In this document: piece by piece, positions 3,608 through 57,117 of the stretch
How the letters are laid out: the number at the start of each line of letters is the position of its first letter
Position numbering within the stretch: position 1 is the first letter of the stretch
Assembly: GCA_965644295.1 (NCBI GenBank)
Contig: CBFFRP010000039.1
Location: 62,001 to 126,000, forward strand
Direction of reading: 5' to 3'
Origin: Paraphysomonas bandaiensis
Lineage: Eukaryota; Protista; Chrysophyceae
Length of the DNA stretch: 64,000 bases
Translations under genes and position numbers: made by a program
The notes under the pieces: model-generated
Databases searched by the model: none
What the model was told of the DNA's origin: nothing
Seen by the model: only the letters and a program-made list of their open reading frames with translations

Positions 3608-4167
3608 CCCTCTTGGCAAAGTCGGACTTGCACTTATTCGTGGCGTTCTGAGCGATAAGTACAGGACATATCTCCGGGAAACTAACGTGAGACGTGAGGC
3701 ACATATATATATAGTCAGTAGATAACATTCTGCCCACTCATAGCCAAAGGGACATTCTGCTTGTGTGGTACAAGGGACTTAAATAGTGGTAATAGTGTCA
3801 CTTGTGTACACGTCTTTGGGCCCTGAGGAATAAACACGCATCCGGGAATGGGCCCGCCTTTAGGGTAACTGGGGTATTGGGCTGCCTGCTGAATTCGAGC
3901 TCCCGGGATGAGTTCACCTTAAGGACTCAGAAATTCTAAAGTCAGCATATGTCAGGTGTATGTCTCTAAGCTTTTGGTTTGTCTCTAAGTTTGCTTTGAG
4001 TGATTGATAGCGGGGATGGTTGCGCCTTTTGGTGCTTGCGGCAACGCACAAATAGTTCTCGTGGCATTAAAGAGTAGAATATTAGCAATAGTATTATATA
4101 TATTAGATTATTTCAACTTAGTAGCTCCTTGCTTACTCGTCTACTACTACTAATAAGACATTCAATA
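3608..4167 (+). mobile_element. Ribozyme-headed SINE-like retroposon, copy A (degenerate, long subfamily)
   Basis: Aligns by eye to 48994-49508 (reverse complement) from CCCTC..AAAGTCGGAC to AGACATTCAATA; a further inverted 3' fragment lies at about 4375-4510. Confidence 0.8.
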
Positions 4168-16518: not shown

Positions 16519-19500
16519 ATGTCGAGTATTGAAAGAGATGCAACTGACAAGAAGCCTTCTCGTGGCAGTCTGATGCTGAAGAAGAGACAGGTGATATCAT
16601 GCATAGAGAGTGTGCTGCAATCTGCTGTGGAGGACTACAGCATGTGTCATGATACGGCCACACGGCTGTTTGATATGGGGGTAAGCGGGACAGGTCAGTT
16701 TAGTCAATAGAGAGCGACTAATGTATACTCATATGGCCGTATACGCAGAGGATATACTTGCACTGTGCACAGAGAGGGATCGTCTCATTGCAATGGGACT
16801 GTCATCAGAACACATCAGTCGTATAGCGGATGTGTGCAATGAGATTATACAAACAGAGACCTCTAATCATCCGCCACGTGCAGCATCAGTCAGTCAAGAG
16901 TCAGATAGATTTGCAGGTAATGTGAGTTACTTTGGAGGGAAAGCAAAGACCGTTGCACATATCAACTCAAGAAGAAGCAGCTTAGATACTCTTAAGACCA
17001 GTAGCAGCTCACTGGATGCCCGGAATGATATGAATATCTATGTAAGTGGGTACAGCGGGTCGGATGGGTGTTTCAGTCATGCCAATCCACTTCTATTGAG
17101 TGAAAACGAACGATTGGTGCTTGGGTGTATTTTGACATCTGATCAAGGAGGACCTGAGATGGATGATAACTCGGATGATAATATACAAAGCGAGCCTTCG
17201 TCCCATCGTTCTTCACGGCGATCTACCCTACCCCGTATGACATGTGCCACCAGGAACTCTTTTGCTGGAGATGTCATGCTCACTATGAAGTTGAAAGAAA
17301 TACCTTTTTCAAGAATCCATTGGGGACGACCTATTCGTGCTTCTGATCCAACACCTACATGTTCTGACCCCATATATATCCCACCCTCTGTTTCGGAGAA
17401 TATATCTGACGAGAGACTCCGTAAGAAACTGGCCACCATACCGCCTGCTCGTATACATTGGGGTCGCTCTTTGTCTCCCGCTGAGACGGTACCTAGAACA
17501 AATCCCTCTGCCCTCCCCGATGATAAAAGTTCCCTAGAGTCTTCACCGCACACAATTATAAAACTGTCACAAAAGTCAGTATATTCCCGCAAACATCGAC
17601 CACTACCTGGACGCATATATTCTACTCATACAGACAACAGTGCATTTGTGTTTGTGAAACCCCATGCTAACGTTTCCCCAGCGTGTCGAGTACTTGTTCG
17701 TTATGTGTTAGCGTCCCATGGTGTACATGTTATTGAAGAGGGTGAAATATCTGCTGAGAGCATAGACAAAGAAAAGCTCATTGACCAGCACTACTATGCA
17801 ATAGGATCGAAAGCAGTGATGCTGAAGCCTAGTGAGTTAGATGTTCCTGCGGACAAGTTTGAGTCTGTATTCGGGTTGTCTTGGCAAAGTGTACTGGATC
17901 AGGGCCTCGCATACAATGCCATGGATGCATGCACCACATTGGGCCTGAACTCATCTGAACTTGATGCGGCTTGGTCTAAAGCTAAAGACAACCGAAAATT
18001 GGTTAAGCTTGGGGGTGGATTCTACTGCGGCCTAATTGACACTGTTCCGGGAAAGCCTGCTATATATGTGATTAATGGCTTTTACATGTCAATGCGATCA
18101 AAATTTGTTAAACCTGGCTCATCAATCTACTATTTCAATGTGGAGTGGAACTCATCAGAATTATCTTTCAGTGATTTTCGTAACAAGGTTTTGGGCTGTA
18201 CTGACCCAACACTTGCTCCTTCTACCTCTATCCGTGGTATGATTCTGTCGGACTGGCGATCTCTGGGGCTACGCAGCGTACCTAACACTGGAGATAATGG
18301 TGTACATGCGAGTGCGTCTCCATTCGAGGCTCTTGCGGAACGCATGAACTGGCTTGGAATTTCAGCGAAAGATGATTCCTTTGGCCGTAAGCTTCTCGAT
18401 GTAGGGATACCAGAGGGTGTGATACAAGCGTGGAGCGTGGATCCACTTGTCAAAGGGAAATCTCTCTTTGACTCTCTGGAAGAGCTCAACAGCAGTGACT
18501 GTGTGGCTAAATCAATGGTTTTGAGTAACTATATTTCCCTTCCACCGACTACGACTAGCCCTTCTTCGAGTGAGCGTGCTGGGTCATTCAGAAGAAGCAT
18601 ACGACAACATATTCCATCTAAAGATAACAGTGCATTTGTGTTTGTGAAACCCCATGCTAACGTTTCCCCAGCGTGTCGAGTACTTGTTCGTTATGTGTTA
18701 GCGTCCCATGGTGTACATGTTATTGAAGAGGGTGAAATATCTGCTGAGAGCATAGACAAAGAAAAGCTCATTGACCAGCACTACTATGCAATAGGATCGA
18801 AAGCAGTGATGCTGAAGCCTAGTGAGTTAGATGTTCCTGCGGACAAGTTTGAGTCTGTATTCGGGTTGTCTTGGCAAAGTGTACTGGATCAGGGCATCGC
18901 ATACAATGCCATGGATGCATGCACCACATTGGGCCTGAACTCATCTGAACTTGATGCGGCTTGGTCTAAAGCTAAAGACAACCGAAAATTGGTTAAGCTT
19001 GGGGGTGGATTCTACTGCGGCCTAATTGACACTGTTCCGGGAAAGCCTGCTATATATGTGATTAATGGCTTTTACATGTCAATGCGATCAAAATTTGTTA
19101 AACCTGGCTCATCAATCTACTATTTCAATGTGGAGTGGAACTCATCAGAATTATCTTTCAGTGATTTTCGTAACAAGGTTTTGGGCTGTACTGACCCAAC
19201 ACTTGCTCCTTCTACCTCTATCCGTGGTATGATTCTGTCGGACTGGCGATCTCTGGGGCTACGCAGCGTACCTAACACTGGAGATAATGGTGTACATGCG
19301 AGTGCGTCTCCATTCGAGGCTCTTGCGGAACGCATGAACTGGCTTGGAATTTCAGCGAAAGATGATTCCTTTGGCCGTAAGCTTCTCGATGTAGGGATAC
19401 CAGAGGGTGTGATACAAGCGTGGAGCGTGGATCCACTTGTCAAAGGGAAATCTCTCTTTGACTCTCTGGAAGAGCTCAACAGCAGTGACTGTGTGGCTAA

Positions 19501-19522
19501 ATCAATGGTTTTGAATAATTAG
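16519..19522 (+). CDS. Protein with long low-complexity N-terminus and two tandem protist-type nucleoside-diphosphate-kinase-like domains
   Basis: AFVFVKPHA, FR..VLG.TDP..A..S.RG and DNGVHASAS..E motifs, each twice; exon 16519-16693 joins via intron 16694-16748. Confidence 0.8.
17636..19514 (+). repeat. Intragenic direct repeat, 889 bp x2 (17636-18524 and 18626-19514)
   Basis: Offset 990 bp; I could see only one substitution (17906 C / 18896 A, Leu/Ile). Confidence 0.95.
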
Positions 19523-19932: not shown

Positions 19933-20399
19933 TATTGAAAGTCATATTACTAGCAATAGGCGTTAAAAAACTGCACAAACTTAGTAGTTAGACCTCTCCT
20001 GTAACTTATCAGTACACACTTTTTTTATCCTACTATTTAACGCTACGGAAGCTGTTGTGCGTCGCCGCAAGCACCAAGGTGCGACCACATCCGCTCTGAG
20101 TTCTTAAGGTGAATATCCCGGATGCTTGACTTCAGCAGGTACCCTTCAGGTGGGCCCTGTCCCGGATGCCCTTGAGGTGGACCCATTCCCGGATGACTGT
20201 TTATTCGTCAGGGCCCAAAGACGTCTACACAAGTGACACTTATTGGTGTCTCTTGTTCCACACAAGCATTAGGCTATGAGTGGGCAGAAGAATATATGCT
20301 GACTATGTTTGCGGCTCACGTTAGTTTCCCAGAGAGAATCTCTCCGGTACTTATCCCCCAGAACACCACGAAAAGGTGCGAGTCCGACTTTGTTGAGGA
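19933..20399 (-). mobile_element. Ribozyme-headed SINE-like retroposon, copy B (short subfamily)
   Basis: Full-length ends; TSD TGCCACAAAA(G/A)A at 19921-19932 and 20400-20411. Confidence 0.85.
20311..20399 (-). ncRNA. Putative HDV-like (L1Tc/ingi-type) self-cleaving ribozyme
   Basis: P2 CUCGC/GUGAG, P3 ACC/GGU, L3 UUUUCGU, P4 CCGGAGAG/CUCUCUGG, J4/2 GAAACUAA. Confidence 0.7.
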
Positions 20400-27537: not shown

Positions 27538-30500
27538 ATGGAAGAACACTTCACTATCGATGGCATGAAGTGTGAGGCGAACTGCGCCTCATCTGTAACC
27601 AGAGCAGCTCTATCAGTTGATGGGGTCTCTCAAGCGTCTGTCGATCTCCCTCATCGTTCTCTTGTTATCACTTACTCTCCTTCTCTTCCTGTATCTCTCA
27701 CTGATACACGGGCAGAGGAGGTTGCGATGGCGGTGGAGGAGGCGGGGTATACAGCTCATTGGGGTCGAGGGAAGTGTATCAGATACTTTAAAGTATCGGG
27801 GATGTTTTGTGATCACTGTAAGGGAACGATTGAGAAAGCTGTTATGGCGATTGATCGTGTTAAAAGGGTTATAGTCGATTTAGACCGACATGTGGCGACT
27901 GTTATTATGGAGGAACAAGCAGATGTTGCGGCGATATTAGATGCTATTGATTGTGTGGGATATGATGCAGAGCCGTATGAAGGAAGTCGTGATGTTACGC
28001 TGTGTATATCGGGCATGGTGAGTGGTATCATTTATGTGCAGTATGTTCATTTTTGATATGTGGTTTGATGGAGCAGAAGTGTAAAACCCGATGTGGTAAC
28101 ACTGTTCACAACGCTCTTCGTCGCCTCCCTGGCGTTGCATGTGTGAAGGTAGATGTAAGTCAGGGTATAGCTCAAGTACGGGGATCTGCTAAGTTTGAGG
28201 ATATTGCTTCGGCTGTTGAAGGTGCAGGTGCATTCACTGTTACTTGCTCCCAAAAAGATGAAACCTCGTCCTCAGAAACGACCACTTCTCTTCCAACAAC
28301 GGGAGATACTGTGCACCCTGTTAATCTTGACGAATCGACGGGGCACAGTTTTGGCTCTAGTGTGGGCAATTTGGCGGATAGTCGGACATTGTTTAGTATC
28401 AAGGGTATGTCTTGTGGCGCCTGCGTGGCAGGAATAGAAAGATTACTGTTGGGGCTACCTGGGGTGCAACAAGCGACTGTTGCTTTGTTGACCGAACGTG
28501 GCGAAGTTCTCTATGATAGCAAGAAGATATCTTGGCAAACGTTGTTGTCGGCGATAGAGGGGGCTGGATATCGAGCTAATCATGTGACTACGAGAAGGTA
28601 AATTGTGATACGTTTCTCGTGACTGCTATATCATATTTCTCCATCAGCAATAGCAGCTCAGACTGTGATGAACGGCGGTTCATGATAACTTCCAGAGCAC
28701 ATGTAGACGTGAAGAAGGAATGTGAGGGTGTGACAGCTCTACTGGACTCGGGTGGTGTGCTGGAAGTAAGATGGCTGAACGCCAATGATGAAAATATTGA
28801 CGAGTCAGGAGGATCATCTAGCGTGCTAGAGGTCACCTATGACCCGGCAGTTGTTGGTCTTAGGTATATACTAGAGAGTCTAGTTAAGTCGAATCCTCAG
28901 TTCAGTGTATCATTGATGAAGAGAAAGGTGCCTTATTACGAAAATTCTTGTGATACGAAGACCTACGTATTAAATCTTATTGTATTTTTGTGTTGTGTAG
29001 GGAGGCGGGGCAGAGTCGATGGAAGCACAGAATCGAGAAACTGATAAGCTCCTTCGTGACTTAATATTTGCATCTGCCCTAACTGCACCTTTGTCGGTAA
29101 TGATGTGGACAGGTATAAAAATACGTTCATCACCATGTTAATTCTGACGAAGCCTAAGGTGTACTAATGGAGAATGTCATTCCTGGACTGACGTTGATGG
29201 ACGTTGCCGCAGTGTTCCTGGCAACTCCTGTCCAGTTTGTCTGCGGGCAGCGCTTCTACAAGGTTTGATGGCATACGTATAGGACCTACACACACTGATA
29301 TGATACTTTAGGAAGCGTATCGCGGGCTTTTATCGAGAACACTGGGGATGGGATTTCTTGTTGTTCTAGGAACTACCTGTGCTTATGTCTTTGGATTGAT
29401 GTCGGTGGTACATAGTGTTCTTAGGAAGGGCCATGTTCCTTCCTATACTGACAACTTCATGACTTCTGCAATGCTAATATCATTCGTACTTCTGGGAAAA
29501 TACATGGAATCAAGAGCAAAGTCGTACACGTAAGCTCCACTATATCTGTCAGTGTTGGGGTGATATCTTCTTGCAGTTCTGTTGCACTTCAGAAGCTGAT
29601 GGAGAAGCAGCCGAACACAGCTATACTACTTTCCACTAAAAGCAAAGGTTCGAAAGAGGGCACAGTTGGCTATGAAGTGATCAGTGAGCGGTCGGTACCA
29701 TCGGAGCTTCTGTCTGAGGGTGACCTCGTTAAGGTGGTGCGTGGAATGATTATACCATCAGATGGAGAGGTTGTTCTCGGCGGTGGAGAGGTCAATGAGT
29801 CACTCATCACAGGGGAGGCTCTACCAGTATCTAAGTGTGTGGGTGACGATGTAATTGGTGGCACCCAATTGGTTGAGGGGCTGCTACACATTAGAGTAAG
29901 GTCCTTGCCGGAGAATTCTGTGCTTAGTCAAATTATAAAACTCGTTGAAAACGCTCAGATGAAAAAAGCCCCGATACAGCGAACAGCAGATTCTATTGCC
30001 GGCGTGTTCGCTCTCTGCGTAATTGGCGCAGCCGTTGCTGTATTTATCATGTGGCACATTTTACTTGCCCATTACCTAGTTCCTCGGTGGATGCTTCCTC
30101 AAAACGTGTCGAATTTCGTCGTTGCGTTCACTTTTTCTATTAGCACTTTGGTGGTTGCATGTCCTTGTGCGATGGGTCTTGCGACACCTACTGCCATTAT
30201 GGTAATAGTACTCTTCTATGTATCGTTTATATATGACCTTTTTTGCAGGTGGGCACCGGTGTTGGTGCAAAATTGGGCATTTTAATAAAGGGAGGTGAAG
30301 CATTGGAGACGGCAAATCGACTTACGACTATTGTTTTTGATAAAACGGGAACGTTGACGATGGTGTGTAATCACTATAAGTATGCTGTAAGTAACAAGCA
30401 AAGTAGGGATGCCCAGACGTGTCCACTATATATCTGCTGAGCTCCAGTGGATCCCACATGGTCAAAGTGCGTGGAAGTAGTGCAGATGGAGTGCAGGCGG

Positions 30501-31957
30501 TAGGAGAACAGGGTCGAGTCGCTGCATCGAGTGCTGAGGACAGCATATATGACATATGCAGCGGTCAGGGTGCATCATCGGTTGTCTTATCCAGTATTGA
30601 TACGCAAGACCTGAATAGTGATGAGTTTATGGACGAGGATGGCTTGCTGTGGATGGTTGCGTCAGCGGAGCTTAACAGTGAACACCTCATAGGACGTGCT
30701 ATTGTACGACATGCGCAATCTCGAAAGCATCTACCTCCACTAGAGCACTCGGATGAGGTGTCCGCTACCACCGGGAAGGGTATTAAATGCATGGTGTTGG
30801 GTTATGAAGTCATTGTAGGCTCTCTGAATTTCTTGCGCGAAGAGGATGTTCAGCACTCTCACAACAGCACTTTTGCGAATATGGCGATTGCGGCACAGGA
30901 GCAGGGGTCAATTGTAGTCTTCGCAGCTATAAACGGTTCGATGCGAGGTATGATTCAGCTGGCAGACAAGCCCCGGCCAGAAGCTGCCGACACAGTCGCA
31001 GCTCTTCATGCTCTTGGGAAGAAGGTCTGGATAGTAACCGGGGACAGTATCAGAACGGCAACTTCCCTGGGCGCAATGGTGGGTGTACCCACTTCTAATA
31101 TCATATCTGAGGCCCTACCGAGTACCAAGATTCAGCATGTGATGCGCCTTCAGGATGAAGGGGAGTATGTCGGGTTTGTTGGGGACGGTATAAATGATGC
31201 ACCAGCAGGTACGATGATCTCTCGATACTTTTATATTATTAATATATTTCTATGTATTTTTGCTATTCGATGACACGCAGTCGCCCAGGTATCTACTTTG
31301 GTTTCATTTTCTTTTGTCTAATCATGCACAGGCTGATGTTGGGATCGCTATCGGCGGGGGTACGGACGTGGCAATGGAGAGTGCGGACATGGTTCTGATG
31401 CGGGCAGATATATTTAGTGTAGTGACCGCAATCGATCTGTCTCATGCGATTCTGCGATGCATAAGGAGAAATCTCTTTTGGGCATTGGCATACAATGTGG
31501 TAGGATTCATTGTTTTTTACGTGGGCGTTGAGTGGGATAATGCTTGTGAAACTAGGTATCGATTCCTTTAGCGGCTGGACTTTCCCTTCCCATATTCCAT
31601 ACTGTGATACCTCCGTGGGTTGCAGGCATGGCCATGGCAATGTCATCGGTCTCTGTGGTATTATCATCTCTAAGTTTACTAAGCTACCAACCACCGATTA
31701 GACAAAATTCTGTAGGTGTTCGACCTACAAATGCACCAATGCGCACGCTTGTGAGCAACGTTTCCCCCCAGCCTCAAGTGGACAGTCCTTTTCGACCCAG
31801 TGGACTGGAGTCTCTGTTATCGTTTGCTGGCCCAGTAAGTGATGATTCGAGAGATGGGGTGTACAGTGGTATGGGGATGTTAGAAATGGAAGGAGAACGG
31901 ACCTCATTATTGGAGAACCGAAAACACTACGGCTCCACTGACCAATGTAGAATGTAA
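27538..31957 (+). CDS. Copper-transporting P1B-type ATPase (ATP7/CCC2/RAN1-like) with at least 4 HMA domains; many introns
   Basis: [17 protein letters not shown]|KCKTRC, GMSCGAC; [39 protein letters not shown] and MAMSS Cu(I) ligands. Confidence 0.92.
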
Positions 31958-34000: not shown

Positions 34001-35632
34001 AGCTCTCTCTCTCTGTCCAACACACTCATAACACCACTGCAGTGTCATACACACACACAGTACACTCTACCTCCTCCTAGAAAAACCCCAGACAAACTAT
34101 CGCCTCTCCCTTACTGTGTGACCACGTGGCATTTCCCATGCCCTATCTACGTGGCTATAGTATCACGCTATTGAGTCACATGCATGGTTACATTGACTTT
34201 TAGGACCCTATGTTGGTTTAAGACCCTATATCAGGACCCTATATATTGCTTTAGGACCTTCATTGTGTTCAGGATACATATTATGCAACACCATTTGGAC
34301 ATTGGTAATGTACCACAGTGTACCTACATATTGAGCCAACGTTCGGGTATGATGTCCAATTTTTATCTGCTGCTGATGATGTACGACTATGATCTGCTGC
34401 TGGTGACTTCGGTCGATGTGAAACCTGCTGCAAATTTATATCAAAGTTATGTGGGCCCGTATTCCTGTGTAAGCAGTTGCAGTATATACTTCCATATACA
34501 TACATACATGTATTACCCGTACTACCCTATAGGGGGGCAAATACATGTGACCATCACAGGAGAGAAGTCGCTATTGTACACTTGAGGTGCACGAGTGTTT
34601 ATGCAAGGCTTATTGGGGTTCGATTGCAAATGTGGTGTGCGTACTATACGTACTATACGTACCGTATTTATGCATTTCCTGGATTAGGGGGTTTTCAGTC
34701 TCTGGTAGGGTATAGATACGTAGTATACGGTGTACTCTCGGCATATGCTGGTGAGCCATTCCCTATCAGGTTGCTGTGTATTTTTCAGTTTTGATTGAAG
34801 AGTTACACAACCTGTGGTGGTGTGATGACACCACGTGTGTTGCACCATGTTAGGAGTGTGTGTGTGTGCATATATGCTTCTATGGTGTTTATCACTTGTT
34901 TTAAGTTAAACCAAAGCTTGGTGCCAGTGAACTTGGGTACCGGCGGTATACCATTGCGCGGTGGCTCTTTGCGGGGGTCACTAACTAAGTTTAGGTCTAG
35001 ACTTAGAAAAGTGTTTTAATAATAATACCGTTATTACTGTTCTTTGTTGGTTCAGTGTAGGTGTTGTTGTAGTTTTATTGTCTACGAGCCAACACCCTGG
35101 TTATCAAACCGGGTGTTGTTATAGTAAATATTTACTTTACTGCTCGTACAGAAATTTCTGTCTTTGCGCTGTTGTTTCACACTCTTATAAGAAACTAACT
35201 GCGACACGCTTCTTTGGGCTTGATTCTTTGGGCTTGTTGTCTGTTGCCTTCGGTTGCCGGTTGTTGTTGGTTGTCTGTTGTTCTCTGGGTGTGAGTTGTC
35301 AGTAGTCTTTCTCTAGGCTCTTTGTTCAGTGGTGATTGTTTGATTCACAGTGTGGTGACTGAGGAAATTCGGTTCTTTTCGAAGTCAATCGACCGTGGAT
35401 ACCGCCTGTGTGTTAACTGTTGTCACTTGTACAAATCCGACGGGTTCAACGGTTTTGAGTGTTGAGTGTTGAGTTTTTGGATTCTTACGCAGGGTTGTCT
35501 TTGGGATTTGTCTTGGTGTGTTGTTGAGTTCTGGGTCAGTGGTTCTAGGAGTTGCCAGGGTTGCTTGTCTCAGTGTGTTAGGGAAAAGTTTGGTGGATAT
35601 AGTCTTTGAGGCGGAAGTTCTTCTCATTAACC

Positions 35633-37441
35633 ATGTCTACTCCGACTGGTAAAACGAGGAGAGGCGGCAAGAAAACTCCTGGGAAAGATCAGGAAGCCGC
35701 TGGTAGTGGTGAAACCAAACAAGATGCTGCTGGAGGTGTGCAGGATGTCGTTCAGGAGTCTTCTGCTCCAAACATCAATCCAAACCAGGAGATTTTGGAC
35801 ACAGTTCGTGCCATGTCTCAGTCTTTTACAGAGGTGGCTACTGCAGTGTCTAACCTCAGCAGCAGGATGCAAATATTGGAGAATAGAGTACAAAATGTTG
35901 AGGATGGTGAGAGCAGTCAGTCTCAGGCTTCTGTGGGCTCACATCAGCGGCAAAAGGTTACCAAGCGCACGTCGAAACACAAACGTCAGCCGAGGTATTC
36001 CACTCTGGAAAACATGGCTAAGTTTCGCATGATTCCTCAGGAAGATAATAGCAACAAGGAGGACGATGGTTCGAATCCCGATGTTGATGGTGATGGTGCT
36101 AATGATGTGCCTACCCTCATGGATAACATCTTCAAGGGCAAGAAAGCGGGCAAGTTATTCAGGGATTTGAAGAAAAGTTCTGAGGTGGCTAGTGCCAAAA
36201 CAGTTACCATAACTAGAGAGGAAAGGAGGTGTCATGTTCGCATCAATGACTTCAAGTTGGGTAAAGTGGCGAAAGCGATCAAAGACATCTTAGAGTTTCA
36301 AGAGCAAGAAGAAACTGAGGTGCGAATTCAAAAGGTACTTTCAACCAGTTTGAAGGCACATCTGCGGAATGTGTACAGCATCACACATGCGCAGCTAGCA
36401 CAAATGGATGTTTCGGATTTGCTTCTCATTGTGGCTCAGGAGACCAAAGTGTTCAATTGCGTGGCATTTTATAATGAACTCAGAGATTCATTGAAACATA
36501 TCCAAATTATGGACTGGAAGTATGTAAATGCTGTGACTTTTGAGGCATTCTATCATCAGCAATTGAACTTGATGCAGTCGTTCCAAACAATGTTGTCTAT
36601 CATGTTGGTCTCAAACAAAACATGGTGTCCTCGTATCGATGACAAAGAGTACGGATTGATAAGACTCTTTAAGACTTTGAATGACGGGACCTATGTTAAG
36701 TATGTGTTGGGGTGCATGTCGACAAATAAATTTGACTCTATGAGCGAATTTTTCAAAGAGTATTCGGCTGTACTCTTGGATCATTATCAAGTAACCATCG
36801 CGTACCGACAGTTACCTATGGAGTCGACTACGATGTTTCAACAGAAGCACGAGGACTATCTTAAGAGGAGAAAGGAACTATTCTCTCAACAGTCCAACAA
36901 ACCTTCGTTGAACAGTCGTGTTGATTCTAAACCAAGGGTTTCGCAAGTGTCACATCTAGATACTTACGATGAGTCTGGAGGAAACTATAACGATGAGTGG
37001 GATGATAATGATGGGTATGTACCCAATGATGATGATTTGTGGGATGCTCCGAGTGAGACTTGGCGGTCCAGTAATCTGGAGGTACATGACGATAAACAAG
37101 TCGCTATGATGACAGATGTGAAACCAATGTCGGGTAATGACGCAGCAGTTGATGAGGAGCGTCGTTTTAACTCTGATAGGTCTCTGTCAGCCATGCATGC
37201 TAGACCAACTGGTGCTCAGAATAATAAGACCGATAAGTATGGGTGTCTAAGAAAAATCATGTATGGCAAGTGCGACAAAACAGACTGTCCTTATAATCAT
37301 AATGCGAAATGTCTGTTGGATTCTGCGTCCGAAATGCGGGACAAGATCGATGCGTATCTTAAGTCTGCGGGAAGTTCGGAGCAGAGGGACAAACAACCGA
37401 CCATCTTGAGGAGGGATCACTTCGGTGATTCCCGCCCTTGA
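35633..37441 (+). CDS. gag: Gag-like protein with coiled coil and C-terminal CCCH zinc finger
   Basis: 602 codons from ATG 35633, immediately upstream of pol; C-x8-C-x4-C-x3-H at 37244-37300. Confidence 0.7.
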   Translation: MSTPTGKTRRGGKKTPGKDQEAAGSGETKQDAAGGVQDVVQESSAPNINPNQEILDTVRAMSQSFTEVATAVSNLSSRMQILENRVQNVEDGESSQSQASVGSHQRQKVTKRTSKHKRQPRYSTLENMAKFRMIPQEDNSNKEDDGSNPDVDGDGANDVPTLMDNIFKGKKAGKLFRDLKKSSEVASAKTVTITREERRCHVRINDFKLGKVAKAIKDILEFQEQEETEVRIQKVLSTSLKAHLRNVYSITHAQLAQMDVSDLLLIVAQETKVFNCVAFYNELRDSLKHIQIMDWKYVNAVTFEAFYHQQLNLMQSFQTMLSIMLVSNKTWCPRIDDKEYGLIRLFKTLNDGTYVKYVLGCMSTNKFDSMSEFFKEYSAVLLDHYQVTIAYRQLPMESTTMFQQKHEDYLKRRKELFSQQSNKPSLNSRVDSKPRVSQVSHLDTYDESGGNYNDEWDDNDGYVPNDDDLWDAPSETWRSSNLEVHDDKQVAMMTDVKPMSGNDAAVDEERRFNSDRSLSAMHARPTGAQNNKTDKYGCLRKIMYGKCDKTDCPYNHNAKCLLDSASEMRDKIDAYLKSAGSSEQRDKQPTILRRDHFGDSRP

Positions 37442-40400
37442 TGGTTCGGTGGATGTGACGATACAGACAAGGAGGATTCCAATTCAAAGACTCGGGATGA
37501 GAATGATGAATGTTCAGTGCATTCTAATGATCTTAATGAGTTTGCGAATTCCTCCAATGTCTGTATCGGGGATCAGGCTAAGCTGTATGCCTGCTATCCT
37601 TCATCCAAGAGCTTCTCTTCAGCGCACACTATAGGAAGGATTACTTTAGATAGAAAATTTGGAATAGAGGAGTTAGTAAAAATATTGTGTGACACTGGAG
37701 CCCTCTCAGCCAATTATGTGTCGAGGGATTTGGTGGACAGATTGCGGAACAAACTAGAACCGAGCCGTTTTTATAAAGCTAAACACCGTGTGGTATTGGC
37801 GGATAGTAGAACGGTGAAGGATCTCAATGAAGGAGTCAGATTAAATTTAGTGCTGACTGATCCGAAGAGTCATACCTATCAATATACGGGTGAATTCTTT
37901 GTGATTGATATGACGAGTAATGATATTATTTTGGGGTTGCCTGCGCTGACTGGAAAATTATATCCTTTCATGTGTGCTGTTATGCGTGAGGCACATGACA
38001 CTCAAATCGAGGGTGTCTCCGATAATGAAAATTCGAATGTGTTGTCATCTCTGGCAGGGGACACGGTTGACTCTGATGACCGTGTGCACCCATGGTCAAG
38101 AGCGAGTGATGCTATTGCCCCAGAGGATGAGGAAACCGAGTTACCGGTTCAATTCAAGGATGCGTTGACATTCTTAGGAAAGTCTAGGGAGGAAGCTCTC
38201 CAAGACTATCATGAGCAGATAGAGACTCATGTCAGTGATGAAATGAAAAGTGAAACTAAGATTATGGAATTGTTGTCAACGAAGGCTGAAAAAGTGTTCG
38301 TGCCTGACGAATGGAGCGGTGTGAGAGGTGTGGACCCTTTGTCTCTAAAATGGAAAAGCACTCTCCCGGATCGAATGAAACCAAAGGCTCGCCCGATCAA
38401 TCCTAAGCTGTGGGAGGCTTCGGAGAAGGAGTTTCGGCGACTGTGTGGCTATTTCTACCGAAAGATTCGTTCTCCTTGGGCTTCATGCCTAGTGGTTGCT
38501 CCCAAAGCCACTCCTCCATACATCCGTTTTTGTGGTGACTATGTGCAAATTAACAAGCACATGGAAGTGGGAAATTATACGATTCCTAATGTTAAGCATG
38601 AGTTGGACAAGATTATCAACTTTCCGCTATATATGGACATCGATTTAACAAATGCTTTTCATCAAATTCCATTAGATGATGAAACTTCTGAGCGCCTATC
38701 AATTCAGACGCCTTGGGGGCAATTTGCTCCTAATTTCATGCCAGAGGGTATTGCTCCGGCCACGGGTGTTTTACAGGAAACTGTGAGAGAAATATTCGAT
38801 GATTTCTCTGAGTGGGCCATAGTCATTTTCGATAACATGCTTATATTGGCTAATGATGCCAGGGATGCTTATGAGAAGTTCGAGAAGATCATTGACAGAT
38901 GTATTGAAAGGAATGTGAAACTTAAGATGCCAAAAAGCTGGTTGGGGTTTAGAAAAGTGGATTTCTTTGGATATGTTTGCCGTCACAAGTCATATGAGGT
39001 TAATCCCGATAAGAAGGAGGCTCTCGGCAAGATTCCAATGCCTACTAACACCAAACAGGCCAGATCGTTGCTGGGTAAAGGGGTATTCTTTTCTAGTTTT
39101 ACGCCTAGATACTCTGACTTAGTTGCTCACTTGACTGACATGACAAAGTCGAGTTTCAATTGGGACAAGTCCACATGGCGGCATGACTACGAGGCAGAGT
39201 ATCGTCGTTTCATTGCTGGACTACAAGACGCTTGTGAGCTGTTTTATCCTGATTATAATCTTGAGTGGACATTGCGTACTGACGCTAGTGAGTTGGGAAT
39301 AGGTTCAGTGTTATTGCAAAAGAAAATATTAGAGGATGGGAGCATACAGTGGCAGCCTATAGCTTTCATTTCCAAAAAGTTTTCTGCCCAAGCTCAGAAG
39401 TGGTCAACTATAGAGCAAGAGGCATATGGCATTTTCTACAGTGTTAAACACTTGGCTTATTACTTAATAGGCAAGCAATTCACAATTGAGACCGACCATA
39501 ACAATTTATTGTGGATGGAATCTTCGGATGTTCCAAAGATTACACGATGGAGGATATTCTTGCAGTCTTTCAACTTCAGCATTCGTCATATATCTGGTGC
39601 CAAGAATTGGTTGGCGGACTGGTTATCTAGAGAGCATCAGGTTGCTATACTCTCTGGAATATTCCCAGAGGAGGAATATGATGACGCCTATTTCATGGGG
39701 GATGACTGTAATGAGTATGAGTACTTTAACTTTCTGGGTAACTTTATGAACCCGGATGATCGAGAGATTGGGGACCCTCCAACATCTCATGTATCACCGG
39801 AGACGGCGTTGCGTGAGGTTCATAACGCGCGAGTTGGACACATGGGGGGAAGGGCTACCTGGATACGCTTAAACAAAGAGTTCCCGGGTCATAATATTCC
39901 TTACAAGGTTGTTGAGGATTATATCTCTAAGTGCCCAAATTGTGTGAAAACGAGGTTGGCTATGAAGGAGGCTCTTATCCCGATCGTACGAAATCTCAAG
40001 CCCCCAAATGCTCGTAGCGCGATTGGTATAGATGCTGTTGAGATTACACCTCACGGTGCAGAGGGATATACACATATCAACGTGGTGGTCAATCTTTTCA
40101 CCAAGTTTGTGTACCTTGAACCTGTCAAAGGTGTGACGGCTCTTAATCTTGCAAATACTATATGGAAATACTGGAGTCATTACGGTCACACAGATCTAAT
40201 AATCTCGGATCAAGGACCGGATTTGACTTCAGATTTGTTCAAACAGTTGACGGAGTACATGGGTGTTCGGCACACTTTTAGTATTGCCAATCGCCATGCA
40301 AATGGATGTGAAAGAATTATTGGAGAAGTAGTTCGACATTTACGTGCTCTGGTCTATGATTACAGTGAACGGGAGGAACGAAAAGACATCTTTGAGGACC

Positions 40401-41425
40401 CTAGTTGGTTAGCAAGTGTTCAATATCTTCTAAACTCTGAAGTGTCTTCGGAAACAGGATTTTCGCCTTTTGAGTTGACGTTTGGCTCAAAGGATCTTGA
40501 CTATTTGAACATGGATCTCAAAGATCTCCCAGATAGGGCGCATGCTAGACTCACTGCGCTTAATGATCAGTTAGCCCAACTCCGAGAGGCTTCCAAAGCT
40601 TATCAGCAAAAGTTAGCCACGGAGAGGGCAGGAACAGGTGTGCATCCCGATAGACAGAATAGGTATCAACCGGGAGATTTTGTCTTATTTGACAAAGGGG
40701 CAAAGGTTCATCCTAAGATGTCTCACCGGTATATGGGACCTTTCTCAGTCAAGTCCCAGTACAAGAATGACGTAGACTGTCAACATCTCGCCACTGGGCA
40801 AGTGGTTCGTGTTTCCGTGAGCGACGTTAAATTGTTTCCGGGAGATTCTGATACTGCTTATAAAATGGCTTTACGCGATCAGGATCAACATGTTATTGAT
40901 GAAATCCTTTATTACCGTGGTGATAGAGAGGTTCGATCTACCATGGTTTTCACTGTGCGTTTTCAAGATGGAGATATCCGAGAAGTCCCTTACAGCAAGG
41001 ATATTTTTGATTCCGTTCCTTATGCTGAATTCTGTTCTCGAAAACGATATCTTTACCATCTTATTTATACTGCTGACTATGCAAAGAAATACATCGCGGA
41101 TTTCCGCCGGCAACCGATCACTCAGTTTCAACCTGGTGATCTAGCCTATGTTGATTTGCGAATTTATGGTGATGCTTGGTACGATGAGTTGGAATTACCA
41201 GATTCTCATCTCATTACTTATGTAGCTCCTATCCAGTTCACACACTGGTATCACAAGAGCTCTAAGCGAGTTTTATCGGTGAAGGACCTTCTCACCCTCC
41301 GTACCTACCGTTATGATAATTACCTAGTGCATTGTTTTGTCCATTCCGAGGTGAATGCTAGCACAATGGTACTCGTGGACGAGGATTTTGCCAACAAATA
41401 TCCTCAGGTCCGTGCGTCTTATTAA
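37442..41425 (+). CDS. pol: Pol polyprotein (aspartic protease, RT, RNase H, integrase, GPY/F, chromo-like)
   Basis: LCDTGA; DLTNAFHQI, MPEG, IFDN; TDAS, EQEAY, ETDH; H..H..C..C, D-D-E (IDAV, SDQG, NGCER); YMGPF. Open and in the gag frame from 37442. Confidence 0.92.
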   Translation, partial: WFGGCDDTDKEDSNSKTRDENDECSVHSNDLNEFANSSNVCIGDQAKLYACYPSSKSFSSAHTIGRITLDRKFGIEELVKILCDTGALSANYVSRDLVDRLRNKLEPSRFYKAKHRVVLADSRTVKDLNEGVRLNLVLTDPKSHTYQYTGEFFVIDMTSNDIILGLPALTGKLYPFMCAVMREAHDTQIEGVSDNENSNVLSSLAGDTVDSDDRVHPWSRASDAIAPEDEETELPVQFKDALTFLGKSREEALQDYHEQIETHVSDEMKSETKIMELLSTKAEKVFVPDEWSGVRGVDPLSLKWKSTLPDRMKPKARPINPKLWEASEKEFRRLCGYFYRKIRSPWASCLVVAPKATPPYIRFCGDYVQINKHMEVGNYTIPNVKHELDKIINFPLYMDIDLTNAFHQIPLDDETSERLSIQTPWGQFAPNFMPEGIAPATGVLQETVREIFDDFSEWAIVIFDNMLILANDARDAYEKFEKIIDRCIERNVKLKMPKSWLGFRKVDFFGYVCRHKSYEVNPDKKEALGKIPMPTNTKQARSLLGKGVFFSSFTPRYSDLVAHLTDMTKSSFNWDKSTWRHDYEAEYRRFIAGLQDACELFYPDYNLEWTLRTDASELGIGSVLLQKKILEDGSIQWQPIAFISKKFSAQAQKWSTIEQEAYGIFYSVKHLAYYLIGKQFTIETDHNNLLWMESSDVPKITRWRIFLQSFNFSIRHISGAKNWLADWLSREHQVAILSGIFPEEEYDDAYFMGDDCNEYEYFNFLGNFMNPDDREIGDPPTSHVSPETALREVHNARVGHMGGRATWIRLNKEFPGHNIPYKVVEDYISKCPNCVKTRLAMKEALIPIVRNLKPPNARSAIGIDAVEITPHGAEGYTHINVVVNLFTKFVYLEPVKGVTALNLANTIWKYWSHYGHTDLIISDQGPDLTSDLFKQLTEYMGVRHTFSIANRHANGCERIIGEVVRHLRALVYDYSEREERKDIFEDPSWLASVQYLLNSEVSSETGFSPFELTFGSKDLDYLNMDLKDLPDRAHARLTALNDQLAQLREASKAYQQKLATERAGTGVHPDRQNRYQPGDFVLFDKGAKVHPKMSHRYMGPFSVKSQYKNDVDCQHLATGQVVRVSVSDVKLFPGDSDTAYKMALRDQDQHVIDEILYYRGDREVRSTMVFTVRFQDGDIREVPYSKDIFDSVPYAEFCSRKRYLYHLIYTADYAKKYIADFRRQPITQFQPGDLAYVDLRIYGDAWYDELELPDSHLITYVAPIQFTHWYHKSSKRVLSVKDLLTLRTYRYDNYLVHCFVHSEVNASTMVLVDEDFANKYPQVRASY

Positions 41426-47952: not shown

Positions 47953-48308
47953 CCTCTCAACAAAGTCGGACTCGCACCTTCTCGTGGTGTTATGTGGGAG
48001 ATAAAAGTGCCGGAAACTAATGTGAGCCGCTAATATAGCCAGCAGATAAAGTTCTGCCCACTCATAGCCAAATGCGTGTGTGGTACAAAAGGGACTCTAA
48101 AATATAAGTGACAAATAAACAGGCATCTGAGAATGGGCCCACCTCAAGGGCATCCGGGGCAGAGCCCGCCTCAAGGGTAACCGGGGTATTGGGCAGCCTG
48201 CTGAAGTTAAAAGCATCCACGATATTCACCTTAAGGACTCAACATCCCTTAAGTCCGCAGATGTCAGGTATATCAACATTCTGCTTGCTCACTGTGTTTG
48301 CTTTGAGT
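47953..48308 (+). mobile_element. Ribozyme-headed SINE-like retroposon, copy D (3' part lost)
   Basis: CTCAACAAAGTCGGACTCGCACCTTCTCGTGGTG head and family body. Confidence 0.8.
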
Positions 48309-48672
48309 AATTAATGCCGAATACGAGTTCACATTATTCGGTATCTGTGCGGCCAATGACCGAGATAATGTCAATGGCAATGTGCTTATTAGACCTGTTA
48401 TGTGGGAGGACCCGGCGCCAGAGATACTCTACCTGCTGCTGTGAATACCACCTTGACACAGGAGACATATGCCGAAAAGACACCGGCCGCAAGTTATTTG
48501 TGCTTGGACAAGAGTAGATTGGGCAGTTGCGGCTTTTAAACACGCAACTCGTCGTATGTCCACTAAATAAACTAAATCGTGCTGTATAGTTTAGCACTTA
48601 CTTGTTGGCGGTGCGTGCAATAGTAAAAGTAGATGGGATTCATGATATATAAGCTTAGGCTATGTATGCATT

Positions 48673-48759
48673 CGGATCACGTTAGTTTTCCGGAGAAATT
48701 TATTTGGTACTTGTCCCCCAGAACGCCACAAAAAAGTGCGAGTCCGACTTCGTTGAGGG
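48673..48759 (-). mobile_element. Isolated ribozyme head of the SINE-like family, copy E
   Basis: Only the 87-nt 5' signature (CCCTCAAC...CTAACGTGATCCG) is present. Confidence 0.75.
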
Positions 48760-48993
48760 CATGATGACAAAGGGTGTGCAACACAAATACCTGTGGGTGA
48801 TGTCGCACTAGAGGCAGGCCACTCCATTTTAATTTTTATATTGTTTAGGTTGGAACTCCTGTGTATTATTAGTATGATGACAGCTAAAGTATATAGCTAC
48901 TTGAGTACGTAGTTAAGTATCAATAAATAGCAGCCAAACACAATTGTAATTATAATTGACTACAACCTCCTGTGTCAATATATATATTGGTAT

Positions 48994-49508
48994 ATTGAAA
49001 GTCTTATTATTAGCAATAAGCGTTACAAAACTGCACCAACTTAGTAGCTAGATGAATGCTAGACAAACTAAATAGACCTCTACCTGTAACTAATCAGTAC
49101 ACACCTTTTTTATCCTACTATCTAACGCTACGGAAGCTGCTTGTGCGTGCGTCGCGCCACAAGCACCAAGGTGTGATCACTTCTGCTCTGAGTACTTAAG
49201 GTGAACATCCCGGATGCTTGACTTCAGCAGGCAGCCCAACACTCCGGTTACCCTTCAGGTGGGCCCTGTCCCGGAGGCCCTTGAGGTGGGCCCATTCCCG
49301 GATGCCTGTTTATTCGTCAGTGACCAAAGACGTCTACACAAGTGACACTTATTGGTGTCCCTTGTACCACACAAGCATTCGGCTATAAGTGGGCAGAAGA
49401 ATAACTGCTGACTATGTTTGCGGCTCACGTTAGTTTCCCAGAGAGAAACTCTCCGGTACTTATCCCCCAGAATACCGCGAAAAGGTGCGAGTCCAACTTT
49501 GTTGAGGG
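48994..49508 (-). mobile_element. Ribozyme-headed SINE-like retroposon, copy F (most intact)
   Basis: TSD ATATATTGGTAT at 48982-48993 and 49510-49521; no TIR, no ORF. Confidence 0.88.
49420..49508 (-). ncRNA. Putative HDV-like (L1Tc/ingi-type) ribozyme
   Basis: CCCUCAAC..GGA CUCGC ACC UUUUCGC GGU AUUCUGGGGG AUAAGUA CCGGAGAG-UUU-CUCUCUGG GAAACUAA C GUGAG CCGC. Confidence 0.7.
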
Positions 49509-50310
49509 AATATATTGGTATGCAACCCTGATGTTTATTCTAATATTGTGTATCCGACACAGACATTTATTTGTTGGATGATGTAACTCAAACAACTGAA
49601 CTTTAAATTTACTCAATCATCAATTAATAAAAATTGTGATCATCATCTCTTCACATTCATGCTGATCCACTAAACTTTTATCCTCACTACTACCCACTAC
49701 CAATCAATATTATCAAATCTTAGGCAGATATGCCATATGCCCTCTTATATCTTGAACTTGTACAGTAAATATATTTAGTTTCACTTACATGACTCATATC
49801 ACATCATGAATTCATCTATTACTGTTTACAATTTACAACTACACTATTATTCAAGTAACGATTATAAATCAAAAGCCTTAAATTACAGCTTTCATTGCTT
49901 AGAAATAAGAACGGTACGTATTTTCGCTGTTTTGCTTTTTTACTTTTAACTGTGTCTGTTCATGCGTACAATCAATATTACGCTGTGTGATTCCAATCAA
50001 ATGGGTAAGTTTTTAATCATACAATTAACTTAGCTAAGTCCCAATTCGCAATCATTTGAATGGTACGCCGCAGGCTACAACGTTCTGTATTACATACAAT
50101 CTTCGTCGCTGAAGTAACCTGTCATCCTGCAATTGCTAGATACTATATTATAACATTCGGTATTCCTATAATTCGAAATCTTACTGAACTTCAAAATACG
50201 TTTCATAACCACGGAGCTAAAAAAAAGGACAAAGTAGTGAAGAGTTGAGGTGTTAGTTAGTAGCAAGATGGAGGAGTATTTTCACAGAAGATAATCGCAA
50301 ACTATCTAGT

Positions 50311-53924: not shown

Positions 53925-54475
53925 CCCTCAACAAAGAGTCGGACTCGCACCTTCTCGTGGTGTTCTGAGGGATAAGTACCGGAGTTATTTCTCCGAGAAA
54001 CTATCGTGAGCCGCATATTATATATAATATATAACCTCACGATACATACCAAGAATATGTAATAGTCAGCAGATATTGTTCTGTTCACTCATTTGCCACA
54101 TGCATGTGTAGTACATGGGACACTAATATAAGTGTCACTTGTGTAGTAGGTAGTAGACTTCTTTGGGCCTTCACGAATAAACAAGCATCCGAAAATGGGC
54201 CCACCTCAAAAGCATCCGGGGTTTTGGGCTGCCTGCTGATGTCAAGCATCAGGGATGTTCATCTTCATTAATCAAAAATCCTGAAGTCAGCTGATTGCAG
54301 GTATATATCAACAATCTGCATGCTCACTGCGTTTGCTTTTTCGAGTGGTAGAGCGATAGTGGTTTCACCTTGGTGCTTGCCGTGACGCACAAGCAGCTTT
54401 CGTAGTGTTAAATAGTAGAATATCAGAGTTAAGTATAACCCTTAAACGCCTAGTGCTAATAATGGACATTCACTA
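53925..54475 (+). mobile_element. Ribozyme-headed SINE-like retroposon, copy G (long subfamily)
   Basis: CCCTCAAC...ACCTTCTCGTGGTGTTCTGAGGGATAAGTACCGGAG...GAAACTATCGTGAGCCGC head, body to GACATTCACTA. Confidence 0.83.
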
Positions 54476-54646: not shown

Positions 54647-57117
54647 CAGGGCTGTGTATCAATTAATTGATGCAGGTTGTAGTCAATTATAATTACAACT
54701 ATTACTTGCTCTCTCAATTTCAATTATTTAGTACTAAAAAATACACTAGCTGCCAATATTATAGCTCTTAAATGTAGAGAAGTCAAGCTCTTGTGCAAAC
54801 CCGTCATAACAAACTTAGCTCTACTGAACAACCTTTCAACTTTATTGGTTATGACATGCAAGTGCTTCATGCTGCGGTATCGACGAGTTTGCTGGTTAAG
54901 TCTTGCTCGTTTCCGCTGTCTGCTTCCATAAATCAAACGTTGCGCTGCGTCATTATTCTGAACTAGACTCTCACTGTCATCATCATCTTCATTTTCATCG
55001 AGCAAAAATATTTTAATTTGATCCTTTTCCGTCCGAGTTGCAGCTTCGTTGCCACATTGAGTCTTCACGACTGCCTTTTCAAAAGCAGCGTTATGAATAA
55101 TAGCAGCATATATTGTCGCCAAGATGACGCTCGACAAAAAGCGGGTGCCTTAAGTAAACATTATGGAAACGTGGGAAATTTTGGAGTATTTACAGTATTT
55201 AAGTAGAAATAATGTTTAAAAAACTATTCTATTTGTAGTGTTAGTGTTAGAGACAACAAAAAATATTAATTTTATTTTAATTTTAAGCCTCATAGGATGT
55301 TACAGAAGTGCGTTTTTGCTTACCAGTAACCACGTTATCTGCCTTCATACTACCACACTATCAACCCATTGATCACCATGATGAGCGGACTAAGTGTAAT
55401 TGCCAGCAGTCATTGCCCTCTACTCGTAGCTACATTGTTTCTAGCCACTTGTGATTTAAATATACAACTTAAATACGAATTACATCATAATGTAACTTTC
55501 CTTTCACTGTATGAACAACACACACTAAAAGTCCATGAACATTTATCACTTTCTCACTCACATTGAACTGTAGTTCACCCCATTGTCATCACACAAACAA
55601 TATATGTGATACAAAACTGGCTCTCAGTACAACATGAGCCTCTTGCATGCACTCGGCTCAACGAGAGAATATGTAGCACATATAACAATATAGACAACAT
55701 ACCCATCACACAACCAATATACGTCATACACTATATCTCTCGGTGCACCCTGCCTGAGCATACTATATTCACTCAGCTACCACAAAATGTATGTACAAAC
55801 AATGTACAAACGTCGTGGAAGTCAAGCTCGTGTTCACCTTACTTTGTAATTATTGTAAGGATATTAGTTGAAGCAATTCCAATTCCCCCCGTAATTGCAC
55901 GAGCTTGGCATGCTCTTTTTCACTTGGTATTAGACTTCAGACGTCGGAACCAAACTCGCAAGATCGCAAATGATTAGATAGAAGCAAGTAGCGGTCAATC
56001 ATGGCAAATGTGGAGCCTTTTTACAATACTATTCTCTATTGCAGCCTCTTCGTTATTATCATATATTTTCTCAAAGAACACTCGTGCAATGACTTCTGGT
56101 GTCAGTTAATTAAATGAATTATTATGTGAGATAACCCTATGGATATTATAGTCTTTCACAAATCTTCGATTTTTATCCTATTTATTGAAAGTCTTATTAT
56201 TAGCAATAGGCGTTACAAAACTGCACCAACTTAGTAGCTAGATGAATGCTAGACAAACTAATTAGACCTCTACCTGTAACTAATCAGTACACACGTTTTT
56301 ATCCTACTATTTAACGCTACGGAAGCTGCTTGTGCGTGCGTCGCCACAAGCACCAAGGTGCGACCACTTCCGCTCTGAGTACTTAAGTTGAACATCCCGG
56401 ATGCTTGACTTCAGCAGGCAGCCAATACCCCGGTTACCCTTCAGGTGGGTCCTGTCCCGGATGTCCTTAAGGTGGGCCCGTTCCAGAATACCTGTTTATT
56501 CGTCAGGGCCCAAAGTATATTGAACTACAACCAACTCCTACGTGCGTACTTGAAGCTTGGTGAAGCCAATCGCTAGTAGTTATCCTGTATTCTATGATGT
56601 AGCAATGAAATACAGAATATACATGACTACAGTATATAGGAGTAGCTTTTACAAGTATACAAAGAAACTGAAAATATTGTAGCTGTTAAAGATATGATTT
56701 GTAGAACAGAATGTTGATGTTGGTGAATGATGTGGTTCCTAACTCACAGTGCCACAACATCATAATTTCACTATATATATCTCCTATAATATCAATCAGT
56801 CAATATTGTACTAACTATAAGCTTAAGTTAATACAAAGACGTCTACACTCTACACAAGTGACACTTATTGGTGTCCCTTGTTCCACACAAGCATTCGGCT
56901 ATGAGTGGGCAGAAGATTATCTGCTGACTATGATTTTTATTCTAAAAATAGGACTTTTTTAAGCAACTTTTTAGTATAAAAAGGTGATATTTTTTCATCA
57001 ATTAACAATTAATTGAAGCAAGCTGGAATCAATTATAATTGCATTATGATTTGCCCCAATTTCAATTATTGCAATTTCAATAACTGACAATTAATTGATA
57101 ATTGATACGCCGCCCTG
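54647..57117 (-). mobile_element. Non-autonomous hAT transposon with both TIRs and nested insertions
   Basis: TIRs CAGGGC(T/G)G(T/C)GTATCAATTA; 8-bp TSD GTTATTAC at 54639-54646 and 57118-57125; transposase remnants including ORF 54724-55137 (NKVERLFSRAK). Confidence 0.92.
56181..56932 (-). mobile_element. 5'-truncated SINE-like retroposon, copy H, nested in the hAT
   Basis: 12-bp TSD ATTTTTAT(C/T)CTA at 56169-56180 and 56933-56944; lacks the ribozyme head; interrupted at 56516-56833. Confidence 0.85.

Follow-up and report, generated by a model that had tools for sequence, protein, structure and literature searches.

A candidate L1Tc-type, hepatitis delta virus-like ribozyme at the 5' end of a non-coding retroposon family in Paraphysomonas bandaiensis

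We identified a probable self-cleaving ribozyme that heads a dispersed retroposon in the chrysophyte Paraphysomonas bandaiensis. The analysis concerns a stretch of 64,000 nucleotides (nt) from this genome (contig CBFFRP010000039.1 of assembly GCA_965644295.1, positions 62,001 to 126,000), hereafter called the window, in which positions 49420–49508 on the minus strand form the 89-nt 5' head of a non-coding retroposon copy of about 516 nt. Nucleotide 1 of the element is window position 49508. Judged from its sequence, this head is probably a ribozyme of the hepatitis delta virus (HDV)-like kind known from the trypanosomatid element L1Tc, which would trim the retroposon RNA at its first base. An earlier note on the window had proposed an HDV-like ribozyme of this L1Tc/Pr77 type, and every computational test run agrees with the proposal: the core sequence, the covariation of a ribozyme class that carries the same core, a covariance model of that class, and target-site duplications (TSDs) that abut the element's first base, C1. 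Membership of the head in the covarying class is computationally well supported. Our confidence that the RNA actually cleaves is moderate, mainly because of a linker between stems P3 and P1 and because some well-folded trypanosomatid candidates are known to be inactive.

On the minus strand, positions 49420–49508 read CCCUCAAC-AAAGUUGGA-CUCGC-ACC-UUUUCGC-GGU-AUUCUGGGGG-AUAAGUA-CCGGAGAG-UUU-CUCUCUGG-GAAA-CUAA-C-GUGAG-CCGC, the sequence that the earlier note had quoted, and differ from the family consensus at four of 89 positions (96% identical). C1–A6 (CCCUCA; 49503–49508) pair with U40–G45 (UGGGGG; 49464–49469) to form P1, and cleavage is predicted on the 5' side of C1. The strands of P2, C18–C22 (CUCGC; 49487–49491) and G81–G85 (GUGAG; 49424–49428), are complementary and share their alignment columns with the P2 that covaries in the class; this stem can be extended by CGG/CCG across a bulged A17. 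P3 consists of ACC (nt 23–25) and GGU (nt 33–35) around a 7-nt loop, L3 (49474–49486 in all). The loop is UUUUCGC in this copy and UUUUCGU in the consensus, opening with the conserved U and carrying the conserved G as its sixth base. The junction J1/4 (AUAAGUA; 49457–49463) is seven nucleotides long and ends in AGUA, as it does in the class (NNNAGUA) and in the trypanosomatid element L1Tco (UCCAGUA). It is followed by the P4 hairpin (nt 53–71, CCGGAGAG-UUU-CUCUCUGG; 49438–49456) and by J4/2 (GAAACUAAC; 49429–49437), which holds the candidate catalytic C76 at window position 49433. C-N-R-A in J4/2 is the pattern of HDV-like ribozymes, and the series C76-U-A-A-C, which directly precedes GUGAG, fits it; the assignment of C76 is made by this sequence fit. 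With the strand order P1-P2-P3-P3'-P1'-P4-P4'-P2', the head can be drawn as the nested double pseudoknot of HDV-like ribozymes.

The helices listed in the earlier note are present in the head. For a two-pair extension of P1 across a bulge, neither sequence variants nor nearest-neighbour energies provide support. In this extension (A7–U37/C8–G36) the changes G36>A, seen in the flagged copy, and G36>C are uncompensated, and the additional pairs are not energetically favoured. Rather than a bulged helix of eight base pairs, P1 is better read as six base pairs that start at nt 1, together with a linker of four nucleotides between P3 and the 3' strand of P1 (49470–49473; AUUC here and GUUC in the consensus). 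Ten nucleotides (GUUCUGGGGG) separate GGU from J1/4 in every lineage of the family, whereas the class has seven, and the other class members have no linker. The energy of the six-pair duplex, -8.7 kcal/mol by nearest-neighbour rules, lies inside the range of P1 duplexes in the class (-6.7 to -11.4 kcal/mol). P1.1 is formed by a single pair between U28 (L3 position 3) and A46, the first nucleotide of J1/4. The earlier note had considered so weak a P1.1 atypical; a single pair is in fact the rule in the class, and a P1.1 of one base pair has also been reported for the L1Tc ribozyme, L1TcRz (PMC3185411).

The core of the consensus head, CACC-UUUU-CGUGGU-...-AUAAGUAC-(P4)-GAAACUAA, corresponds closely to that of the trypanosomatid ribozymes. 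Compared by eye, the L1Tco head (PMC4035085, supplement) and the 3' half of L1Tc (primers in PMC3185411) read CACC-N4-CGUGGU-(7-nt P1')-NNNAGUAC-(P4)-GAAGCUAA. The exact core match in the head comprises 22 bases and was found in none of 100 shuffled sequences. The likeness to the L1Tc signature that the earlier note had pointed out, consisting of a CCC start, ACC-N4-CGU-GGU and a 7-nt linker ending in AGUA, agrees with the sequences in these two papers.

The same core occurs in a class of ribozymes from environmental sequences. A descriptor of the core, CACC-N4-CGTGGT-N7-14-AGTAC-N10-40-GAARCTAA, in which P1 and P2 have no part, was scanned against a metagenome collection and recovered 38 stretches (L066–L103), 27 of them distinct. 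In 19 of the 27, the seven nucleotides after GGT have a perfect upstream P1 partner (7/7), compared with 2.5 in shuffled controls, and in 23 the five nucleotides before CACC pair at 5/5 positions with the sequence two nucleotides past CTAA to form P2 (2.2 in controls). The P1 sequences that make these pairings are of nine or more different kinds, and those of P2 are similarly diverse. For an alignment designated A2 we took 14 class sequences in which P1 pairs at 6/7 positions or better and the MAFFT register is clean, a choice that makes the P1 percentages partly selected; in it 93.5% of cells pair, as against 40–52% when the 3' partners are slid by one to three columns, and none of 500 shuffles reaches the observed value. 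P2 and P1.1 played no part in the choice of sequences. Changes on both sides are seen in all seven P1 pairs and in four of the five P2 pairs, and the P1.1 pair, between L3 position 3 and the first base past P1, covaries as UA and GC. On a larger, model-fitted alignment (A3) P1.1 appears as UA, CG and GC. P4 of the class covaries as well. An earlier MAFFT alignment (A1), with several P1 strands out of register, was left out of these counts. Two blocks are invariant, ACC-N4-CGU-GGU throughout the class and L1Tco, and GAARCUAA throughout the class, L1Tc and L1Tco; the single departure from CUAA in J4/2 is a CCAA variant (L070:6552–6627). At L072:580–3419 a class ribozyme with P1 GGGGGGG/CCCCCCC and a J1/2 of 36 nt is followed by open reading frames (ORFs) with Exo_endo_phos and RVT_1 domains. 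This sequence is a long interspersed nuclear element (LINE) that carries a class ribozyme at its 5' end.

Several further features of the environmental sequences were noted. Some class copies in L066–L103 are preceded by A-rich runs. The CCAA variant on the minus strand of L070 is the second class ribozyme of its contig, on the strand opposite to the first; the exact pattern missed it, and the model scores it at 76 bits. In L074:926–4669 and L094:853–4596, an ORF of 1,248 amino acids (aa) with a weak match to Ulp1 protease ends about 60 nt before a class ribozyme. Finally, an ORF for a P-element-type transposase (THAP and TNP-like RNase H domains; L071:1140–3086, minus strand) is located upstream of a core-matching sequence for which P1 was not found.

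A covariance model (R1) was built from A2 alone and contains no sequence from the P. bandaiensis genome. Run over both strands of the window (128 kb), it gives six full-length matches, all of which are copies of the head, with E-values from 3e-7 to 0.06. The two best are at 20313–20398 (40.7 bits, E 3e-7) and, within the flagged head, at 49422–49507 (34.9 bits, E 5.6e-6), where the model places a 3-nt insertion at the linker between P3 and P1; the further matches are at 53925–54012, 47958–48028, 3610–3693 and 48674–48758. The sole other match in the window is a partial one of 14 nt (E 5.2). A 25-mer of the head, searched with up to three mismatches, gives four matches in the window and none in 100 shuffles.

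The ends of the element were defined by aligning 33 copies with their flanks. Similarity among them begins abruptly at CCCTCAAC. The copies fall into two length classes, one of about 490–520 nt and one of 1,208 nt, which have the first ~360 nt in common and similar ends (...AATAATAAGACTTTCAATA and ...AATAATCAGATTTTCAATA), neither with poly(A). A 3' tail, ...TTTCAATA, is conserved in the family. In the flagged copy, the body and tail occupy 48993–49419 (minus strand), as placed by the alignment of the 33 copies and a tail search, and end in ...AATAATAAGACTTTCAATA with no poly(A). This body is non-coding and had no Rfam match, and the window copy holds no listed ORF of 180 aa or more. The copy is flanked by a TSD, CCAATATAT in element orientation, at 49510–49518 upstream, with one extra base before C1, and at 48982–48990 downstream.

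Of the 40 full-length copies examined, 34 are flanked by TSDs of 7–15 bp, mostly 10–14 bp. The upstream duplicate stops at the base preceding C1 in 30 of them and one base away from this point in the remaining four. The window also contains two 5'-truncated copies, one starting near 32221 on the plus strand and a headless one at 56183–56935 on the minus strand. TSDs that abut C1, together with 5'-truncated copies, point to target-primed reverse transcription of the LINE type, with C1 as the 5' end of the template RNA. The elements are short, non-coding and TSD-flanked, with 5'-truncated copies and a conserved tail, as is characteristic of LINE-dependent non-autonomous retroposons, or short interspersed nuclear elements (SINEs) in the wide sense. 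No non-long-terminal-repeat (non-LTR) reverse transcriptase or endonuclease was found in the window or in loci L001–L065, where only Ty3/gypsy and copia elements were seen. Pieces of the element are present in poly(A) marine metatranscriptome assemblies (Logan contigs), none extending beyond the element ends; this is weak evidence, as assembled contigs have neither strand nor 5' ends, and neither transcription nor cleavage can be read from them.

In the genome as a whole (62.5 Mb in 669 contigs) a first look gave 1,680 head candidates, and all 40 of a scored subset are 96–100% identical. Copies of the 1,208-nt non-coding class (L031:201–1408; also L032–L035 and L039–L064) are about 99% identical to each other and have TSDs of 10–15 bp. 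This degree of identity shows the class to be young and recently active.

Head-bearing elements also form tandem arrays in two places. In L035 (G000:C421:64000–73999) three 1,208-nt copies, spaced by 1,393 and 1,775 bp, are bordered by satellite-like sequence that is identical from copy to copy, and on contig C134 (G000:C134:280498–285738) at least five heads recur with a period of 1,291 bp. In two other loci, L013 and L006, independent new copies have been inserted within the head of an older copy at nearly the same place (element nt ~40–42, GUUCU|GG), and their TSDs, CGTAGTGTTCT and TTCGTGGTGATCTGG, consist of head sequence. This near-identity of site may reflect a target preference or may be due to chance.

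Among 85 distinct head sites, two near-identical young variants dominate, and these differ only in P4. The hairpin is CCGGAGAG-AUU-CUCUCUGG at 22 sites and CCGGAGA-UAUU-UCUCCGG at 25 sites, and is therefore kept in both, with a 3' strand that differs between them. In both lineages the catalytic-core positions are all intact, including U and G of L3, the P1.1 pair, CUAA of J4/2, P2 and P1. Older copies carry the changes G42>A, C20>U and G21>A, which preserve pairing, alongside disruptive ones. The pair-preserving variants to which the earlier note had drawn attention do exist, yet they are too few to be separated from the neutral decay of dead copies. Because dead copies decay neutrally, variants in old copies neither support nor contradict the fold.

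With HDV-like ribozymes, non-LTR retrotransposons are known to detach their RNA from the host sequence with which it is co-transcribed. From the features described above we infer, for this family, that the RNA cleaves itself, that it is co-transcribed and that a LINE mobilises it. The 89 bases would serve as the 5' module of a non-coding, LINE-dependent retroposon family. A copy would be transcribed within a longer host or read-through transcript, and the RNA of the module would adopt the nested double pseudoknot of HDV-like ribozymes in its L1Tc/Pr77 form, with C76 acting as general acid/base. The ribozyme would then cut 5' of C1 to produce an RNA whose first base is the first base of the element. 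A LINE reverse transcriptase (RT) would recognise the ...TTTCAATA tail and copy this RNA into new sites by target-primed reverse transcription, which would give rise to TSDs of 10–14 bp.

Several observations weigh against this reading. The 10-nt spacing between P3 and J1/4, which results in a 6-bp P1 and a 4-nt linker, is found in none of the 27 metagenome members and in neither L1Tc nor L1Tco. TcoSIDER1beta and TbSIDER1beta are inactive in vitro despite adequate predicted folds (PMC4035085), and a good fold is therefore no guarantee of activity. The E-values of R1 carry some circularity, because the core pattern used to collect its training sequences is also present in the head. Independent of this circularity are the head's own P2, which lies in the P2 columns of the class shifted by one pair, its own U28–A46, which lies in the covarying P1.1 columns, and its own P1, which begins at the TSD-defined nt 1. 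Covariation within the family is minimal, the copies being either young or neutrally decaying. The head matched no HDV-type family in Rfam at E-values up to 10, which counts for little because these models are narrow and lack pseudoknots. Finally, the precise 5' end of the element could also stem from a fixed transcription start.

The last point belongs to an alternative to which we assign a smaller but appreciable probability, namely that the head descends from an L1Tc-type ribozyme and no longer cleaves owing to the 3-nt insertion between P3 and P1. The uniform C1 would then mark the transcription start, and the head would have been kept as an internal promoter or start-site element, as in Pr77, or for RNA stability or RT recruitment. 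In trypanosomes Pr77 is both a promoter and a ribozyme (PMC3383444, PMC4748587), the promoter of the hallmark being an internal pol II one with a downstream core element. Moreover, no other sequence in the comparison has the linker, relatives with good folds may lack activity, and TSDs abutting C1 would likewise be produced by a fixed start site. Against the loss of cleavage, neither young lineage has lost any catalytic-core position, and P1 begins exactly at nt 1, which is required for cleavage but not for a promoter.

Two explanations that deny any relationship to ribozymes fare much worse. A chance resemblance, in which a conserved 5' end has no function at the RNA level and a few helices can always be drawn, could account for the weak covariation within the family and for a plain minimum free energy (MFE) of the head that is no better than that of shuffled sequences (z = -0.54). 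However, MFE folding is blind to pseudoknots and so is no test of this fold; the same core retrieves a covarying ribozyme class, and two independent references, the TSD-defined nt 1 and the columns of the class, dictate where the helices lie. We regard such a coincidence as improbable. Least probable of all, and very much so, is an ordinary RNA polymerase III (pol III) SINE with a head derived from tRNA, 5S RNA or 7SL RNA and only coincidental ribozyme-like pairings. The heads of most SINEs do have such an origin (PMC5786205). A better match to tRNA, 5S or 7SL RNA, which the earlier note had said would speak against a ribozyme, was looked for in both head and body, and none was found: Rfam gave no match at gathering thresholds for the window or at a permissive E-value for the head and the whole 1.2-kb element, and ARAGORN detected no tRNA-like structure. 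The 22-base core match and the pairing of the anchored P1, P2 and P1.1 likewise disagree with a pol III origin.

The proposed L1Tc-type ribozyme most closely resembles those of L1Tc/NARTc from Trypanosoma cruzi and L1Tco/NARTco from Trypanosoma congolense, which also lie at nt 1 of non-LTR retroposons, non-autonomous derivatives included. These heads have in common the CCC start, the core CACC-N4-CGU-GGU, the 7-nt J1/4 ending in AGUA, GAARCUAA in J4/2, a single-pair P1.1 and a predicted cut 5' of position +1. L1Tco(78)Rz and NARTco(78)Rz are reported to be highly active in vitro, and cleavage of ~95% is given for Trypanosoma ribozymes (PMC4035085). In contrast to the 7-bp P1 and absent linker of L1Tc and L1Tco, P1 here has six base pairs and the 4-nt linker follows P3; J1/2 plus P2 are longer, and the sequences of P1, P2 and P4 are unrelated. 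P1.1 is U-A here, whereas it is A-U in L1Tco. The elements end in a specific tail and not in poly(A), and the host, a eukaryote whose genes have introns and whose genome carries Ty3/gypsy and copia elements, is not a trypanosomatid. The head has about 22 core positions in common with the Pr77 hallmark, a signature of about 77 nt at the 5' end of ingi-clade LINEs and their derivatives. The term 'ingi-type', used in the earlier note, is too narrow: the same core is widespread in unrelated environmental eukaryotic sequences, and for this reason no specific link to the ingi clade can be drawn. Environmental class members (L066–L103, for example L072, L074, L090 and L102) share with the head the invariant core, the helix positions and the 1-bp P1.1; they differ in having a 7-bp P1 directly after P3 and an L3 that is mostly UCUACGU. 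No existing annotation of these members was seen.

HDV-like ribozymes occur at the 5' ends of animal R2, RTE and other non-LTR retrotransposons (PMC3774820). The candidate resembles them in its nested double pseudoknot and in the predicted release of the element RNA exactly at the 5' junction. They differ in heading autonomous LINEs, usually with a 2-bp P1.1 and a 7-bp P1, whereas the carrier in P. bandaiensis is non-coding. The trypanosomatid SIDER, NARTc and RIME elements with Pr77 are likewise short non-coding retroposons; they have retained the ribozyme at their head and depend on mobilisation in trans (PMC4035085). Those elements are deletion derivatives of their own LINE, while the head described here is attached to a body and a tail of putative LINE origin. 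In Schistosoma, too, a self-cleaving ribozyme processes the 5' end of abundant retroposons, which is the role predicted here; the ribozymes there are twister variants in non-LTR elements and belong to a different class (PMC8501958).

The SINE-like Sm-alpha element of Schistosoma carries a hammerhead ribozyme. LINEs headed by ribozymes and their non-autonomous derivatives, such as NARTc and SIDER, are already known; what is new is the host group. Our literature search retrieved no report of an L1Tc/Pr77-type ribozyme from stramenopiles or other free-living protists, the type being described only in trypanosomatids. Also new are the test of covariation across the class, the covariation seen in its one-pair P1.1, a P1 read as six base pairs plus a linker, the TSD count and the 1,208-nt element class.

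If the head does cleave, the L1Tc/Pr77-type strategy extends to a eukaryote very unlike the trypanosomatids, where it serves a non-coding element present in about 1,000 copies or more. The metagenome result suggests that the core regarded as trypanosomal marks a general class of retrotransposon ribozymes with a one-pair P1.1, and it could become a search model. In addition, the natural variant with a linker between P3 and P1 offers a cheap test of how far the HDV fold tolerates change at that junction. As a broader and tentative idea, which we hold to be possible without favouring it, the core CACC-N4-CGUGGU / NNNAGUAC / GAARCUAA with its one-pair P1.1 may represent an ancient, eukaryote-wide lineage of retrotransposon ribozymes of which Pr77 is one branch. 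In this protist an active topological variant, in which P1 has 6 bp and a linker of 4 nt follows P3, might then have come to head a SINE-like family of more than 1,000 copies in place of the pol III promoter.

Besides the flagged head, the window contains five others, starting near 20399 (minus strand), 47954 (plus), 3608 (plus), 53925 (plus) and 48759 (minus); together with the truncated copies they account for the copies A–G of the earlier note. The copy at 19933–20399 (minus strand) is close to the consensus, with T in place of C as its first base, an exact match to the core descriptor and the TSD TTTTGTGGCA. An older copy at 53925–54422 (plus strand) carries the change G42>A, which turns U4–G42 into U4–A42. 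An old, decayed copy at 3608–4167 (plus strand) was recovered by head and tail searches, and the head search also recovered a decayed copy at 47954–48241 (plus strand) from which P4 has been deleted and a decayed head at 48665–48759 (minus strand).

Other features of the window include an ORF of 933 aa at 16721–19522 (plus strand) with no Pfam match, and a Ty3/gypsy-type retrotransposon at 35606–41425 (plus strand) with a pol ORF of 1,302 aa that contains RT, RNase H and integrase domains. In the latter element the pol ORF is preceded by an ORF of 611 aa lacking a Pfam match. The window also holds host genes that are split into exons, for example a Cu-ATPase gene at 28002–31273.

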